DNA from: Oikopleura dioica
Lineage: Eukaryota > Animalia > Chordata
Direction of reading: 5' to 3'
Assembly: GCA_907165135.1 (NCBI GenBank)
Contig: OU015569.1
Location: 12,028,001-12,092,000 of the forward strand
DNA length: 64,000 bases
Made by a program: the position numbers and the translations under genes. A model generated the notes under the pieces. That model was not told where the DNA came from and made no database searches. It saw only the letters and a list, made by a program, of their open reading frames with translations. Positions 36,199 to 44,219 of the stretch are shown in pieces. Position 1 is the stretch's first letter. Each line of letters opens with the position of its first letter.

Positions 36199-37678
36199 TT
36201 CAAAATTATGCAAGTTAAAAAATTGCTGTTATCATTGTGTTTTGATTCTGGTTTAATTTAACCCGCGCGGCGGCGACTAAAACGAACCTCACTCGGAAGA
36301 AGCTGCTTTGCTGAGTGCGCAAAATATACTCGAAAATTTCCGCTGTTGATTCTTCCTCGCCCAAAATCCGAAAATGAAGCTGGCCAGGGAAAAGTATTTT
36401 TCGTCCCTGACTCAGTCCCTGACTAAGGTTTTGTACACAGGCTGACTCCGCTAGCTTTGTTTTAAGGGTAATGGTATACATCGGCGCGGCGCTGCTCTCT
36501 CGATCCGCGCTCCGCCAGAACCTATTTCTCACGGAGCCGTAAAATCTGAACGGATAAAGATTTTTCAAAATTCAAAAGATTCTGAATAATTAAAGTCTTT
36601 TCTACTAACACAGCGAAATTGGAAATGATTGTCAAAGAAAAACTATCTGAAAATTGCCAGTTTCCTTCAAATGACATTTTCTTCGATATTACTCATCCAA
36701 AATTTTTGAAAATTATACTGTCTTGTAGAAAATCGTCAGCTCTACAAGTCCTGTTTTTCAGATTTTTGTTTGAAGATCTTTGGATTTTAATATGCGCCCT
36801 TGAAGTCAGCGCTGCGAGGTCGTGGCGTGAGAAATAGAGAGCGGAGAGGCGCGAGAAGAAGTAGCGCTCTTTACAAATTGCGATGTAAAATTTATAAAAG
36901 CTTCAAACAAAAATCTGAAAAACAGGATTTGTAGAGCATACAATTCTCTACAAGACAGTGTAATTTTCAAAAATTTTGGAGGAGAAATATCGAAGAAAAT
37001 GTCATTTGAAGGAAACTGGCAATTTTCAGATAGTTCCTCTTTGACAATCATTACAAATTTTGCTGTGCTAGTAGAAAAGACTTTAATTATTCAGAATCTT
37101 TTTGAATTTTGAAAAATTTTTATCCGTTAAGATTTTACGGCTCCGTGAGAAATAGGTTCTGGCGGAGCGCGGATCGAGAGAGCAGCGCCGCGCCGATGTA
37201 TACCATTACCCTTAAAATTTCAGGGTAGAGAACAGAGAGATTCTTGATGTTTGTCCGCTCTACTGTTCGCTTCATCTTTTCCAAAAAAGAAAAAACGGGC
37301 GGATCAAAAAGGCTGACGAATTAATGTGGTCGGCATTATTACATGTAATTCTGCTTTGCGCGTCAAGCAAACACATTTTCCGCGAATGCCAATTCTCCAA
37401 AAAGTAGCCAGATCTTCGAATTACTTGTTTTTTGCATTTTTCCAGTTTGACTAGATAGCTTTTCTAAAATGCAAAAAATACATTCCTTCGGGCAGCTTCA
37501 TTTTTGGCGGATTTTGGGCGAGGAAGAATCAACAGCGGAAATTTTCGAGTATATTTTGCGCACTCAGCAAAGTAGCTTCTTCCGAGCGAGGTTCATTTTA
37601 GTCGCCGCCGCGCGGGTTAAATTAAACCAAAATCAAAACACAATGATAACAGCATTTTTTAACTTGCATAATTTTGAA
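36199..37678. repeat. Outer inverted repeat (~185-bp arms 36199-36383 / 37488-37678) enclosing the 36462 element
   Basis: TTCAAAATTATGCAAGTTAAAAAA...CCAAAATCCG at left is mirrored by CGGATTTTGG...TTTTTTAACTTGCATAATTTTGAA at right. Confidence 0.85.
36462..37215. mobile_element. TTAA-bounded foldback element with ~315-bp TIRs
   Basis: TTAAGGGTAATGGTATACATCGGCGCGG...CCGCGCCGATGTATACCATTACCCTTAA; arms 36462-36777 / 36901-37215. Confidence 0.85.
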
Positions 37679-38000
37679 GACGAACGAACGATGAATGCCG
37701 GTAAAAAATATAGATATTAATAAAATGATATCTTTCTCTATCCGTTGTTATATCAATTAATTCACGACTAAATGAAATTGGATTGGCAAGTCTAAATATT
37801 GAATAAAAAAGGAATAAGAGTGGATAAATCTGCGGTTTTTTTCCACACTGATTTGAAAGTCTAAGAAATTTCTTACAAAAAATTGAAACACATTTTTATT
37901 TAATCAAGTTTATTCACCGAAATTCCGTCACCAAATAATAAAAAATGGATAAATTTTTGTAATCAATTCTCTTTCGTGAATCTTCTTCTTTCTTCAATTA

Positions 38001-41000
38001 TTACGCATTTGAATCGATGGTGGTTTCGATCCATTTGTCGAAGGCAACAGATGAGTAGATTGTAGGCCATTTTTCCCAGCCGCAGCCTCCCTCTCGTGCA
38101 GTCCTAGAGACGACACCAAAAAGAGTCGCTACGCCATTAACGTTGCACACAAGTGGTCCGCCCGAGTCACCGTTGCAGCTTCCGAGGCCGTATTTTCCGT
38201 CATCATAATCCCCATCGTAGTCATAGTAGTCCCAGACGGTTCCTTCGGCTGCTCCGTCTGTCCATCCGTCACCATCTTCATCTGGAAGGCCAGCACAAAT
38301 ATCATAGGTTTTAACGGCGCCCATCATCGAGGAAGGGTATCCAGAATGTTTATTGCAGTAGTCAAGATCCATGATAGAGACTCCGGCGCTTTTTAAATAT
38401 CGTGAACCTTGTTGAGGGCCTTGTTCTGCGATCCTTCCAAAACCTGCGATCCAGCAAGCATCTCCGTCTTTAAAAATATCATGATTAACTTCACCCTGAA
38501 GGTCCCTGCTTATAACTTACGCTTTGGATAACTGTCCGCCAGGCAAACTTCACTTGTTAATCCTTCGCCTTGAGAGGAAATGCTCTTGTCGAATTTGATT
38601 AAGCAAAGATCAGCAAGGTCTGGTCCTGAAGTCCACCCGGGATGAACAAAAATGTTTTCCTTTGGCGCGATTCGGATAAACTCATCAGAACTTGTCAACG
38701 CTTGGTCATTGTCATTGAAGACTGCTATCACTCTGTCAGCTTTCTCGTTGTCGTCCGAAAGACAACAATGTGCAGCAGTTACCACCCAATTATCGCGAAT
38801 AATCGAGCCGCCACACCCGCCGGCATTATCACCGAAGATCAGCTGAAGTCGAGCAAACCAAGGCCAGTGAGTATGATCTGCTTGGTCGAGTCCACCAACG
38901 ATTCGAGCAGGTGATGGTTTGTTATTTGAACATGTTTTGAGCGTGCTTGGGATCTCATCTGTTCTTGGCTGGAATTGGTCACTTGCTTGACTTGCACTTG
39001 TGGAGCCCTGCGTTGATGGAGCTTGAGTTGTTGGAGCTTGATTCGTATTGGAAGCGATAGTTTGCGCGATCCAATCATCCGTCCCAGCTTCCGCAACAGC
39101 CGAAAAGATTGACGGGTAATTTTTCCAGCCGCAACCCTCTACCCGAGAAGCAACACCAAAGACAGTTGCTACACCGTCGACGTTACAAACGAGAGCTCCG
39201 CCGGAGTCACCCTGGCAGACGCCGAAGCCGTCTTTTAAATTCTCGAGATTGGTGTCGTAGTCGTCGTAGACGTTCCAGGAGGTATAGTTCAATCCGTCAG
39301 TCATTCCGTCGCCATCTTCATCTGGATAGCCAACACAAATGTCGTATGTTCTGATAGTCTCACCCTTTTGAGGATATCCAGATTTGGCATTGCAGTATTC
39401 GTGATTCATGATTGAAACTCCTGCACTCTTGAAAAATTGAGTAGAGGGAGAACCTTCTCCTTGCTTTCCAAAACCAGCAACCCAGCAAGCGTCTCCGTCT
39501 TAAAAAGACATAAATGGGGTAGGCCTCGGTTTGGAGAAAGTCGGAATTTTATTACTTCTAATACAGATTCTTAAAGGGGCTTACGTGTGGGATGCTTGTC
39601 AGCGACGCAAATTTCACGGGTTCCTTTGCCTTCTGAAGAAATACTTTTGTCGAATTTGACCAAGCAAATATCAGCCATCCCATCTTCGGTAAAGTGCCAA
39701 CCTATGTAACCTGGATGAAGAAAAATATTTTCTTTTGGCGCAACTCGGATAAACTCATCAGGATCAGTAGCGTACTGGTCAGCGTCGTTAAAAGTCGCTG
39801 TTATGCTGTCGGCGATCACGTCCAGTTTATAGTGTTTACAACAGTGCGCAGCAGTTAATACCCAGTTATCATGAATGATCGATGCACCGCACCCGCCACC
39901 GGTGCCACCAAAATCCATATAGAGTCGAGCGTACCACGGCCAGTGGGTGTGATCAGCCTTGATTCCGCCAACGATTCGAGCAGGTGATGATTGGTCATCA
40001 GAGCATGTTTTCAATGTACTTGGGATATTATCAGTTCTGGTTTTGAATTCTCCAGTCTCGGAAGTTGAAATCGTGGAACTTTGAGTCGTTGGAGCTGTCG
40101 TTGTTGAAGGTGGTGATGTAGGATTGCTATCGATTGTTGCTTCGATCCAGTTGTCCAATTTAGTTGCAACAGACGTGTAAAGTCCTGGAAAACCTTCCCA
40201 GGCGCATTTGAATCCTCTAGATACAACACCGACAAGAGTGGCAACGCCGCCTTCGTCGCATACAAGTGGTCCGCCAGAGTCACTTTGGCAAGCATCGACA
40301 CCAGCACTGAAAGCTTCGACGTGTCTTCGAAGGTTTTGTCATCGTCCCAAAGAGTACCAGCTGGTGCTCCGTCGGTTTGTCCATCGCCGTCGCTATCAGG
40401 TAGACCAGCGCAGATGTCATTCTCTGCGTAAGGACCGAATATATTGAAGTTTAGCGACTTCTCGTTACAGTAGTCGTGCGACATTATTGATATTCCAGCA
40501 CTTTTGAAAGCCGGAGATAATGGAGCGCTGTCAATATTTGATCCTGGTTGCCGATCTCGCCCTATTTTTCCAAAGCCACCGACCCAGCAAGCTTTTCCAT
40601 CTTAAAGACAAACTAAGTTTAAATTTAGAAACGTATTGACTTACGCTGAGGGGTCGACTCAGCAAGACAGATTTCACGTGTTCCTGTGCCTCCAGCAGAT
40701 ATACTCTTGTCGAATTGGATAAGACAAAGATCAGGTTTGGTTGGAGAGTCAGACCAAGATTCAGTCAGTCCATGGTGATAGTCAGGATGTGGAATGATCT
40801 TCGTTGCAGTTAGATTGAATTCGCCAGGGTTTTCTTCGAATTGGTTCGAATCATTAAAGATAGCTAAAACTCCATCAGCATCGCCTAGTTTGCTATCTTG
40901 GCAGCAATGCGCAGCAGTTACAACCCAGTTGTCACGAATAATCGAGCCACCGCAAGGAGCCATATTGTGCAGCTCGCCCCAGGAAAAGTAAAGTCGAGCG

Positions 41001-43127
41001 AACCAAGGCCAGTGTTGGTGATTCGCCTCGATTCCACCAATTATACGAGCAGATGATGGAACATTATTGGAGCAGGTTTTTAGCGAACTTGGAATAGCAT
41101 TCGTTCTCTTCTCGAATTCTTCAGCTGCTGGAGTTGAAGCCGTAGAGCTTTGAGTCGATTGGGTCGTTGGAGCTTGCGTCGTTGGAGGTTTCGTCGTTGG
41201 AGGTTGCGTCGTTGGAGGTGGAACTGTTGGATTATTAGCGATGATTTCTTCAATCCAGTTGTCCATGGCAACAGACGTGTACATACCAGGAAAACTTTCC
41301 CAAGCGCATCCTTCTCCTCTCGAAACAACGCCGACAAGAGTGGCAACACCGCCCTCGTCACAAACAAGGGGACCACCTGAGTCACTTTGGCAACTATCGA
41401 GTCCATTGCTAAACGCCTCAAGATTGGTTGCTTCGTCTAAGCTCTCGTCCCAATAAGTTTCAACGGGTGCTCCGTCGGTCAATCCATCCATATTAACATC
41501 AGGGAGGCCCGCGCAGATATCTTCCTTCGCGTAATTGCCGAAGATTTCGTGATTCTGCGATTTTGCTTCGCAGTATTGTCGCGACATGATTGATACTCCA
41601 ACACTTTTGAATTCTGGAGATAGTGGAGCTTCTTCGCCAACGAATTTGCCAGATCTTCCGATCGTACCAAATCCAGCAACCCAGCACGCTTTTCCATCTA
41701 AGAATTATTCATTTTCAATTTTGTCTTTTAAAATTTTACGTACGCTTAGGAAGTGCGTTTGTGAGGCAAATCTCACTGGTCCCTTGGCCGGCAGCAGATA
41801 TACTTGTCTCGAATTTGATCAGACAAAGATCGGGCTTAGTCGGAGAGTCAGACCATTCTTCAGTAAATTCATACCGGAAATCATCATGTGTGAAGAAGTT
41901 TTGGCTAGTTGCCGTAAGATTAAATTCACCAGGATTGAATTCATTCTGATTCGAGTCATTGAATACGGCTAAAACACCATCTGGATCGCCGTTTGGATCT
42001 TGGCAACAGTGAGCAGCAGTGACAACCCAGTTGTCTCGAATAATCGAGCCACCGCAAGGGCTCTCAACGTACTCGCCGTCATAGGAAAAGTGAAGTCGAG
42101 CGAACCAAGGCCAATGTTGGTGATTCGCGATGGTTCCGCCGACAATACGAGCTGACGATGGACTGTTGTTAGTGCACGTTTTTAGCGAACTTGGGATCTC
42201 GTTCGTTCGTTCTTCGAAATTCTCAGAGTATGGGCAATCTGCTCCGCTTCTAGCATCACATGGGACTTGTTGTCTTAGCTCAGCAATGTCAGCATCAGTG
42301 ATCATTCCCCGAGCTTTGGCGAGTTCCAGCCGCAAACCCGATTGTTCCATCGTGGACAAGTGCAAGTAGCGCCGATTCCGCCAAATCTCTCGCCCGTTGC
42401 ATCGTAGACAATGTCAAGATGCTCGTTCTTCGAGGTGTAGATGCATTTCTTCTTGCCAACGTGAGTAGACTTACATTCAACGGCGATTCCATTCGGAGGA
42501 GGAGCAAGATCAGGACATGTTTTGCACTCGCCAAGCTCTCGTTTCCAAAAAACTGTTTGATGTTATTGAATCGGCATTTTGTGCGTCTTCTTCCGACAGC
42601 AACGAAACCTAAAAAATCAATTTCAAAATTTTTGCATTTCTTACAAGAAATGAAATGGGTGATGTCTAGAACCGACAAAAAATTTCGACAAATTTTGCGT
42701 GGGCGGCTACTCGGCTGCTGATTGGCCGGTTGCCGAATCCAGCCTTCCGATTGGTTGAAAATTTCCGCGCAAAATTTGTCGAAATTTTTTGTCGGTTCCA
42801 CATTAAAAATCGACCTAATCTCGGTTTTTACTGTATCCCTGTACTTCTATTATTATTTGGAATAAATACCTTGATTACAGACAAGAGCGCATGTTGCTTG
42901 ATCACAGACGACTTTTCCATTCTCAGGAGCGGTCAGCGGAGGGCAATTTCCATGAAAAGAGGCAATTCGATCAGTTGGTGCACCCCATCCAGTCTTCTTC
43001 TGATTCAAAGCTCGAAGAAAATCTTCATACTTTGGCTGCTCATAAGCATTTGTTAGAGCAAGGATGCTAGCAAGAAGCTAAAAAAATTAACAATTGAAAA
43101 TAAGAAAAAAAGTGTTACTACCTTCAT
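38001..43127 (-). CDS. Secreted polyprotease: signal peptide, 1-2 CCP/sushi-like modules, four tandem S1 (chymotrypsin-fold) domains; exons 43127-43122, 43077-42870, 42608-41744, 41697-40645, 40600-39585, 39498-38521, 38467-38001
   Basis: [13 protein letters not shown] signal; four AR|I(V/I)GG activation sites, four TAAHC, four D(L/I)CL Asp motifs, four DSGG motifs; all introns GT-AG, with one phase-1 intron at the same position in each domain. Three 1-nt deletions (42547-42552, 42307-42310, 40322) must be corrected for one ORF. Confidence 0.9.
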
Positions 43128-44219
43128 CTCTGCTTTGAAAACTTGTGAACTTGACAATTGCCGGCCTTGATTTTAAACAGTCAGATTGGCATTTGATTAA
43201 TATCATTGAATTGAGATTCAGTAGCAATTAAATTCTAAAACCGGGAAAACGTGAGAATTAGAAACCATGACCTTCAAAGCCGCTTGAAAATTTCATTCGA
43301 AAATGGTAACTTGCAAGAATTTTGCTGAGAAAATCTAGATGCTCCTTGAAATTGGCGATTTTTTAAAAAAAACGGGAATAACGACCTTTAATCATAATGC
43401 ATAACGAGTCTGGTGGAGTCCGCAGACGCATAAACATTAAAAAGAGAGAAAATTTTTTTCGGAAAAAATCGCGATTTTACCACCAAAAATCCAAAATTTT
43501 AATTTTTACTATTTTTTATAAAATCAAAAATGTGCTTAGCCTAGCTTACAAGAAATTTAGCCAATTTTAGGTCTAAACCAATTTTCGGAAAATTTAATTT
43601 TGGAGAAATGAATTTTGAAACGATTAATTTTTAAAAATCTAGGACCGACTTATATTGGAAATCCAAATCTCTAGGATCCATTTTTGGATGACCAATAAGA
43701 TTACCGTATTTGGCCTACCGGCCAATCAAAACCCTTCTCCATAAAATCATTTCAAAAATAAGTTCTTCCCAAATTACTCGTTTCAAAATAATTTTATCCC
43801 CACTAATTGTTCCTAAATTATTTTATTCTCACTAATCGTTTCTCTACTAACTTCTCCAAAATTAAATTTTCCAAAAATTGGTTTTACCCCAATTTTATCA
43901 AAAATTCATCGATTTTTTAATTTTAATAAATTTAAGCGCAGCGTTTTTATATTTCACCAAAAGAAAAATCAAGACTGAAGCAAAATGCAAATGTTGATGT
44001 GTGCCTCTTACAGTAAGGTCGTTACAGTAACTGAATGATAAGCAAAGTGGCATTCGTGGACAGACGGCGACTTCTGAGAGTCAATTTATCTATCTCTGCG
44101 GTGAAATATTAATCCTCTAAATGAGAGAGTGGCTTTACTTGTTTTTAACTAACTAAGAATTAATTCTGACGCTCTTTATCAAACCACATTTTCATTTTTC
44201 GACAAAAAAAGAGAAAAAA

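Follow-up and report, generated by a model that had tools for sequence, protein, structure and literature searches.

A probable secreted polyserine protease gene with four S1 domains in Oikopleura dioica, truncated by a segregating deletion in the reference male

Introduction

The gene described here belongs to the larvacean Oikopleura dioica (Okinawa, assembly OKI2018_I69) and lies on the minus strand of a 64,000-nucleotide stretch of DNA (GenBank assembly GCA_907165135.1, contig OU015569.1, positions 12,028,001 to 12,092,000; hereafter the window, whose own numbering is used throughout), where it occupies positions 43127..38001 in seven exons. It probably codes for a secreted polyserine protease with four peptidase family S1 domains (D1 to D4), whose intact allele would give a tethered zymogen chain of two specificities and whose reference allele is truncated. 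The gene is an independently evolved example of the published polyserase and polyprotease design, an architecture known since 1999-2006; what is notable in it are the four apparently complete catalytic sites, the two-plus-two split of pocket types and the segregating truncation.

Four S1 domains bridged by shared exons

All four domains are members of peptidase family S1, with the chymotrypsin fold. As a preliminary description of this DNA had pointed out, each of them keeps an intact His/Asp/Ser triad, in the motifs TAAHC (His57), D(L/I)CL (Asp102) and GDSGG (Ser195), and all these motifs were found on the minus strand, where a three-frame translation of 43400..37800 has the four protease repeats distributed over three frames. 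The Pfam profile PF00089 scored above its gathering cut-off in six of the six protease-bearing pieces (E-values from 3.7e-13 to 6.7e-34), well outside the reach of chance, and 519 S1 chains of the PDB were matched. Structure prediction, a check suggested in that same description, was done with AlphaFold2 for D4 and its propeptide, and gave a model with a predicted local distance difference test score (pLDDT) of 84.7 and a predicted template modelling (TM) score of 0.88, with low confidence confined to the activation bond and to the acidic, distal part of an insert. The model has the two-barrel chymotrypsin fold, and a Foldseek comparison (E-value 1e-17) placed uPA, elastase, acrosin and trypsin at TM scores of about 0.84 (up to 0.89), which cannot tell elastase from uPA or trypsin.

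The limits proposed for the gene, 38001-43127, proved to be those of its stop codon (38003-38001) and its ATG (43127-43125). All introns are of the GT-AG type, five of them 44-86 nt long and the second one 261 nt. An identical phase-1 intron precedes the motif HG(K/D)ACW in all four protease domains, so that exons 4, 5 and 6 each code for the C-terminal half of one domain, a linker and the N-terminal half of the next. It is this bridging of two domains by each of three exons that identifies a polyserine protease at the DNA level; in exon 4, a single open frame of 351 codons, the Pfam Trypsin profile matches in two stretches (E-value 6.7e-34). D1 to D4 are the only protease domains in the full 64-kb window, and the alternative of separate genes, or of further protease genes nearby, was rejected on these grounds.

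Two types of specificity pocket

The pockets of the four domains fall into two predicted classes. D1 and D2 carry the trypsin-type combination D189/G216/G226 (chymotrypsin numbering), within the motifs VSRG and PGMY in D1 and VSRG and PGLY in D2, and are predicted to cleave after Arg or Lys, whereas the pockets of D3 (ASRV and PSIF) and D4 (VSRT and PTIY) appear to be non-tryptic and of a small-residue type, with a predicted preference for small or medium uncharged residues. The residues at positions 189, 216 and 226 had initially been numbered by eye, and the numbering was upheld by HMMER alignments to tryptase, kallikrein and elastase 1. Against tryptase, D1 falls onto the segments DSCQGDSGGP and VSWGEGC, and its PGMY onto PGIY; against plasma kallikrein, D3 sets a Gly at D189, a Val at G216 and a Ser at G226; and against porcine elastase 1, the C-terminal part of D4 puts T216 on V216 and T226 on T226, with a loop 2 of equal length. 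Moreover, N192 of D4 is the residue found in salmon elastase, and elastase 1 ranks second and third among the PDB matches of this domain. Measured by the elastase pocket (Val216/Thr226), D3 offers G189/V190/V216/S226 and D4 offers G189/T216/T226. The alignments confirmed the trypsin-type pocket residues of D1 and D2, as had been proposed; of the proposal that D3 and D4 are elastase-type, the non-tryptic pockets and the alignment of D4 with elastase over residues 189-228 stood, but Thr216 of D4 is replaced by Gly in orthologues (see below).

Four traits of the domains go beyond the preliminary description: Ser193 in D1 and D2, Arg215, the pair Cys59/Cys104 and an acidic insert. D1 and D2 have Ser193 in place of the oxyanion-hole Gly193, which is kept in D3 and D4. 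Arg215 takes the place of the usual aromatic residue (Trp or Phe) in all four domains; among the motifs of the fetched set it occurs in 40 of about 318, mostly larvacean. The extra cysteines, Cys59 right after Cys58 (AAHCC) and Cys104 two residues past Asp102 (D-x-C-L), are likewise present in all four domains, and their positions suggest an additional disulfide beside the catalytic His and Asp. Both cysteines and Arg215, untypical of S1 proteases, are also seen in the O. dioica paralogues P0162, P0171, P0174, P0177 and P0197. Lastly, an insert of 34-35 residues, 9-11 of them acidic (Asp or Glu), stands directly before residue 189 in every domain, and in D2 to D4 it opens with a DxDxDG-type motif, PD(S/E)DGDGxTDG (PDSDGDG, PDEDGDG), which could form a putative calcium site beside the S1 pocket. 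A short version of the insert occurs in the paralogues: PDNDGNGMTDGG.

Zymogen sites, linkers and N-terminus

The chain begins with a signal peptide, two Cys-rich modules and an activation peptide, followed by D1 to D4 joined through linkers rich in Pro, Thr and Ser. The N-terminus of the signal peptide is the same in paralogues P0162 and P0170. When the N-terminal pieces of the window were compared with Pfam, no match was obtained, Sushi/CCP (PF00084) included; paralogue residues 47-100 aligned with the full Sushi profile (1-56 of 56) at 11.9-15.6 bits, for a cut-off of 20.7 (E-values 0.02-0.3), and the first Cys-rich module can be described as probably Sushi-like. The linkers between domains are 48-62 residues long, have a Pro/Thr/Ser content of 46-59% and are mucin-like, and they end in a conserved activation peptide, ...IPS(S/T)LKTC...(S/P)AR↓I(V/I)GG. 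There are four zymogen activation sites, AR↓IVGG or AR↓IIGG, all with Arg at P1, in line with what had been noticed at the outset, and Asp194 is present in each GDSGG. Counting the cysteine of the activation peptide and Cys122, each unit has 12 cysteines, and in the D4 model the propeptide (pLDDT 85-86) docks confidently.

From these elements, the product of the intact allele would be secreted as an O-glycosylated four-fold zymogen, in which each domain would be activated by a cut after Arg15 that frees Ile16 for a salt bridge with Asp194. Any trypsin-type enzyme could serve as activator, either D1 and D2 of the chain itself or the trypsin-type paralogues. Once cleaved, the domains would stay tethered, as the cysteine of the activation peptide would pair with Cys122 of the following domain, by analogy with Cys1-Cys122 of chymotrypsin. 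D1 and D2 would then cut after Arg or Lys, possibly with a low turnover owing to Ser193, and D3 and D4 after small or medium uncharged residues, the whole acting as an extracellular protease string of two specificities for digestion or matrix processing.

Frame breaks, alleles and the public gene model

The spliced translation of the window has 1531 residues, with an X at each of the three 1-nt frame breaks that remain after splicing. These breaks were checked against short-read contigs from two DNA runs of different studies, X1, which shows 0 mismatches to the window at a depth of 37, and X4, which comes from another study and another individual and is about 1.8% diverged. At 42546 and 42306 an extra base is found in both contigs, and the two breaks are therefore homopolymer errors of the (Nanopore) assembly; once corrected, the first reads QFFWKR, in agreement with the paralogues, and the second LGGMITD, in agreement with paralogue P0012. 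The third break, at 40321, is of another nature: X1 agrees with the window and X4 carries the base, so that we are dealing with a genuine 1-nt deletion, polymorphic between individuals.

The deletion allele comprises D1, D2 up to the 185-loop and 103 out-of-frame codons, which end in a stop at residue 908 (40013-40011). Ser195 of D2 and the whole of D3 and D4 come after the deletion and would not be made from the window allele. What stands of the one-chain proposal is that the four domains sit in one gene, with exons 4-6 bridging them; the window, however, is not one open reading frame (ORF), and the deletion truncates it within D2. The gene maps to the X-specific region (XSR) and a single male was assembled, and the reference animal is therefore hemizygous for the truncated allele. 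Given the signs of purifying selection presented below, the deletion appears to be a null allele of recent origin and not the result of long decay. Such a natural truncating allele, carried by the reference male on its only X, offers a ready test of how important D2 to D4 are.

A reading in which the units are made as separate proteins, through internal promoters, trans-spliced cistrons or alternative splicing, appears highly improbable. O. dioica does use operons and trans-splicing, and a cryptic 44-nt GT..AG interval across the third break (40357-40314) would, if spliced, restore the frame. Nevertheless, exons 4-6 each span two domains in one open frame, and no internal unit has a start codon and signal peptide of its own. 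As for the cryptic interval, its donor (GTACTC) and its acceptor lack local consensus, and two of the five GT..AG pairs spanning the break restore the frame, which is the level expected by chance; this frame rescue was rejected.

The breaks also explain the public record of the gene. The OKI2018_I69 assembly was built from a single male with Nanopore and Illumina reads, and its error rate was estimated at 1.3% (PMC8008620). The public model, GenBank CAG5100103.1 (Oidioi.mRNA.OKI2018_I69.XSR.g16844.t1; 1023 residues), is identical to our gene model over residues 1012-1531 (100%) and 98.8% identical over residues 307-799, and bridges exactly the three breaks with false introns. As a consequence of the under-called homopolymers, it leaves out the Cys modules together with half of D1, the final part of D2 and half of D3. 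The record should thus be corrected from 1023 to about 1531 residues, two of the skipped breaks being Nanopore homopolymer errors. Homopolymers of the assembly are shorter than in the short-read contigs of the two studies at four places, 42306, 42546, 42610 and 43104 (by 1, 1, 4 and 2 bases, respectively); two of these under-called runs are coding, and X1 and X4 also extend two intronic T runs. Other gene models of the same assembly may have suffered similar homopolymer damage.

Orthologues, selection and polymorphism

Between the four domains, the ratio of nonsynonymous to synonymous substitution rates (dN/dS) is 0.17-0.24, at dS values from 1 to above 2. Outside the Okinawan animals, two ocean-metagenome contigs of the European Nucleotide Archive (ENA), L001 (from the Tara Oceans project PRJEB4352) and L002, contain open orthologous frames with 88% identity for the C-terminal half of D3 (D3C), the linker and D4. 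Over D3C-D4, dN/dS against these contigs is 0.28-0.30 at a dS of 0.22; V216 and S226 of D3 are kept in both, and the C-terminus, ...TTIDSNA followed by the stop, is the same. Taken together, the substitution ratios indicate that the domains are under purifying selection. Orthologues were found for D3C-D4 only: searches with the piece joining the C-terminal half of D1 to the N-terminal half of D2 gave no protein above 49-54% identity, those with the equivalent D2-D3 piece gave no match above 55%, a search with the misannotated model P0159 returned distant multi-domain proteins only, and a scan of Joint Genome Institute (JGI) metagenomes produced 21 pattern matches with no relative among them.

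Within the species, 14 synonymous and 12 nonsynonymous codon changes separate X4 from the window over the stretch from the C-terminal half of D2 to D4. Among its listed variants, which run up to 40211 (substitutions in 40212-42696 are unlisted), there is no stop, and apart from the filled position 40321 the haplotype has no frame-disrupting indel, but one in-frame insertion of 15 nt in the linker behind 40082. The differences are unevenly distributed, with 35 in 39254-40211 (D3 and the D2-D3 linker) and one in 38004-39253 (D4), and four of them form a cluster at 39691-39694. Haplotypes of differing age or gene conversion between domains are possible causes of this pattern.

How far the evidence reaches

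Several observations weigh against the picture of a working four-domain protease and are gathered here. In the first place, the allele of the reference male encodes D1 plus a partial D2 without Ser195, and this truncation implies that the distal domains would be dispensable, at least in one cultured male. With no orthologue found that spans D1-D2 or D2-D3, the four-domain form is documented in the Okinawan lineage only. Residue 216 of D4 is Thr in the window (SRTAREGGC) and Gly in L001 and L002 (SRGGDGC, with a loop 2 two residues shorter), so that the elastase-like residue of D4 at this position is specific to the Okinawan lineage. Moreover, Arg215 together with the large 185-loop insert is unlike any characterised elastase, and with these two features in place positions 189, 216 and 226 alone would be an unreliable guide to specificity. 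Ser193 is rare: of 343 GDSGG-type motifs in the homologues retrieved, two carry it and 328 carry Gly. Such a residue does not speak against membership of family S1 but is unusual in an active enzyme, and, to judge by mutants of Gly193, it may severely impair the oxyanion hole; this rarity makes the catalytic strength of D1 and D2 doubtful. Finally, two run searches returned no indexed RNA run containing the stretch. The oligo-dT runs X11 and X12 gave 33 and 8 reads, respectively, 90-95% alike and partly aligned, with flanks encoding ...TRKLGKMITD; they were rejected as transcripts of this gene, as KLGKMITD is the signature of paralogue CBY11088.1.

Some of these points would fit a decaying or unexpressed pseudogene of the Okinawan lineage, with the intact-looking domains as a young relic: the frameshift is real, being present in the reference and in the short-read contig of the same study, neither of the two run searches showed an RNA run to contain the gene, and D1 and D2 carry Ser193. 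We nonetheless hold this explanation to be quite improbable, given that the X4 individual has its frame intact, with no stop among the listed variants mentioned above, that the ratio of 14 synonymous to 12 nonsynonymous changes and the dN/dS against the metagenome orthologues indicate constraint, and that all triads, Cys pairs and activation sites have survived in each of the four copies, at dS values above 1 between them.

The preliminary description had gone further and proposed that one gene encodes a complete activation cascade, in which D1 and D2 would activate themselves and then cut each of the four Arg↓Ile sites, in cis or in trans, with no external protease needed. The trypsin-type pockets of D1 and D2, the Arg at P1 of all four sites and the physical linkage of the domains on one chain are all compatible with it. 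On the other hand, Ser193 is a rare state of the oxyanion hole in precisely these two domains, the inspected single-domain paralogues of O. dioica all belong to the trypsin type and would be able to make the Arg↓Ile cut themselves, and the reference allele lacks D3 and D4. A self-contained cascade is rather unlikely in our view, and nothing that was observed calls for it, though a full cascade in one gene, if shown, would be of interest to protease biochemists. We would also give little credence to a more elaborate version, in which the intact allele makes a disulfide-tethered, self-priming string with all four proteases active, D1 and D2 being the enzymes that cut every Arg↓Ile bond and the acidic insert a calcium-dependent gate; if true, one polypeptide would amount to a complete two-tier zymogen cascade, with two specificities at the same spot. 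The reading favoured here, a tethered zymogen chain of two specificities with a truncated reference allele, leaves the choice of activator to any trypsin-type enzyme.

Origin of the four domains and relation to the paralogues

In a maximum-likelihood tree, D1 groups with D2 (99/96) and D3 with D4 (97/90), and all four form a clade with the O. dioica paralogue P0012 (100/100), whose sister consists of single-domain O. dioica proteins that have their N-terminal modules, mucin linker and activation peptide in common with this gene. Identity is 69% between D1 and D2 and 61% between D3 and D4. The four S1 domains probably arose by intragenic duplication in two rounds, the duplicated unit being a C-terminal half, a linker and an N-terminal half. 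Nested as they are among larvacean single-domain proteases, D1 to D4 form an array that arose independently of the vertebrate polyserases.

The O. dioica paralogues (CBY11088.1, CAG5104654.1, P0162, P0171, P0174 and P0012) share with this gene the signal peptide, the Cys modules, the PT-rich linker and the activation-peptide motif, as well as Cys59, Cys104, Arg215 and, in front of residue 189, a PDxDGxGxTDG loop, with identities of 41-49% in the protease domain and 59-64% in the N-terminus. They differ in having one protease domain (two in P0197) instead of four, and in their pockets, which are D189/G193/G216/G226 behind Lys/Arg↓IV(N/G)G sites, with neither the G189 seen in D3 and D4 nor the Ser193 seen in D1 and D2. 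P0012, a truncated model, has D189 and G193, with 216 and 226 unreadable, and is the only paralogue with a long acidic insert. As the paralogues have D189 and G193, the changes to G189 in D3 and D4 and to Ser193 in D1 and D2 took place within this gene. The distal pair has thus exchanged a trypsin-type pocket for a small-residue one, and triads have been preserved in all four copies under purifying selection, which makes the gene a natural experiment in building a multi-catalytic protease.

Comparison with known polyproteases

Human polyserase-1 (TMPRSS9), polyserase-2 (PRSS36) and polyserase-3 (PRSS53) have two or three S1 domains per translation product; in polyserase-2, the first of three domains alone is catalytically active, the other two lacking critical triad residues, and similar mosaic serine proteases have been described in Xenopus, Bufo, Drosophila and C. 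elegans (PMC1435904). Like the human polyserases, the intact allele of the O. dioica gene would carry several S1 domains in one product, each with its own activation site, and its predicted product further resembles polyserase-2 and -3 in being secreted and polyserase-2 in that the domains stay in one chain. It differs from them in having four domains, all with a full triad, and two pocket classes in one chain, in a Cys-rich, Sushi-like N-terminus rather than a transmembrane/LDLa region, and in mucin-like linkers. Its domains cluster inside a larvacean-specific clade, and common descent with the polyserases is not borne out by the tree.

Among amphibians, the ovochymase polyprotease of Xenopus (Lindsay et al. 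1999) reportedly combines a chymotrypsin-like ovochymase and trypsin-like ovotryptases in one precursor, and Bufo oviductin (Hiyoshi et al. 2002) is said to be a polyprotease precursor with several S1 domains. Both have interleaved CUB domains and are processed to separate enzymes, whereas the gene of O. dioica has no CUB domain, and its domains are predicted to remain tethered through the conserved Cys of the propeptide and Cys122. With pancreatic elastase 1 (PDB 1hax, 1elt and 1est) the likeness resides in the 189-228 region of D4 and in zymogens cleaved after Arg in both cases, but overall identity to D4 is 26-28%, and D4 has Arg215, a 34-residue acidic insert and G189. In the activation of vertebrate proelastase by trypsin, moreover, activator and target are separate gene products, and here the potential activator and its target are on one chain.

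Tandem S1 arrays, in which short linkers connect the domains, are common in databases and were the best matches of a whole-library protein search, at 35-36% identity. They include an uncharacterised protein of Tautogolabrus adspersus (KAM6963464.1, P0151) with 17 head-to-tail S1 domains, others of Labrus bergylta (XP_029133939.1, 6 S1 domains) and Lepisosteus oculatus (XP_069044036.1, P0001, 13 motifs), and metagenome proteins with four S1 domains (P0196) or with mixed pockets (P0017). These arrays belong to separate lineages and have separate origins, and most of them are either uniform in D189/G216/G226 or have dead domains. R↓IVGG sites number 17 in the Tautogolabrus protein, with pockets of the D189/G216/G226 type in 16 of its 17 domains and V226 in the last one; fish proteins with 13-17 S1 domains far exceed the published polyserases. 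Tryp_SPc and CCP are listed among the domains of oikosins (house proteins) in a study of the house proteome, with no link to this gene.

Feature coordinates and neighbouring sequence

Table 1. Exons, catalytic and activation sites, protease domains, acidic inserts and frame breaks of the gene, in window coordinates.
Feature	Position	Strand	Content
Exon 1	43122..43127	minus	ATG AAG, start of signal peptide; followed by a 44-nt GT..AG intron
Exon 2	42870..43077	minus	Remaining signal peptide and first half of Cys-rich module 1
Exon 3	41744..42608	minus	End of module 1, module 2, activation peptide, N-terminal half of D1
Exon 3 sites (D1)	Arg15 42149-42147; His57 42011-42009; Asp102 41831-41829	minus	
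Exon 4	40645..41697	minus	C-terminal half of D1, Pro/Thr linker, activation site, N-terminal half of D2
Exon 4 sites	D1 Ser195 41380-41378; Arg 41047-41045; D2 His57 40909-40907; D2 Asp102 40732-40730	minus	
Exon 5	39585..40600	minus	C-terminal half of D2, linker, activation site, N-terminal half of D3
Exon 5 sites	D2 Ser195 40278-40276; activation Arg 39978-39976	minus	
Exon 6	38521..39498	minus	C-terminal half of D3, linker, activation site, N-terminal half of D4; single open frame
Exon 6 sites	D3 Ser195 39205-39203; activation Arg 38905-38903	minus	
Exon 7	38001..38467	minus	C-terminal half of D4 (Ser195 38165-38163), stop TAA
D1	41231..42146 (residues 227-516)	minus	D189/S190/Q192/S193/R215/G216/G226
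D2	40123..41044 (residues 579-871)	minus	D189/A190/Q192/S193/R215/G216/G226; broken at 40321 in the window allele
D3	39047..39975 (residues 921-1201)	minus	G189/V190/Q192/G193/R215/V216/S226
D4	38007..38902 (residues 1250-1530)	minus	G189/S190/N192/G193/R215/T216/T226
185-loop inserts	40290-40400, 41395-41500, 39220-39320, 38180-38280	minus	
Frame break 1	42546..42547	minus	Run of T6, should be T7; one base inserted in X1 (37/37) and X4 (59.5/59.5)
Frame break 2	42306..42307	minus	Run of G4, should be G5; one base inserted in X1 and X4
Frame break 3	40321..40322	minus	D2, acidic 185-loop insert, before Ser195; base absent in X1 (37/37), present in X4 (58/58), where the frame is restored

The larger size of intron 2 is due to an insertion that resembles a miniature inverted-repeat transposable element (MITE), located at 42669..42798 (about 130 bp) and bounded by terminal inverted repeats of 34 nt with 97% complementarity. 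The depth of the DNA contigs rises over this element to about 1e5, compared with 37-58 for the flanks in the gene, and three further related copies are present in the window at about 14733, 47984 and 51931. Downstream of the gene, the ORFs 36215-36568 (minus strand) and 37469-37720 (plus strand) encode a near-same peptide, ...GQLHF.ILGEEESTAEIFEYILRTQQSSFF.VRF.LVAAARVKLNQNQNTMITA.F, as would be expected of two repeat copies in inverted orientation with about 900 bp between them.

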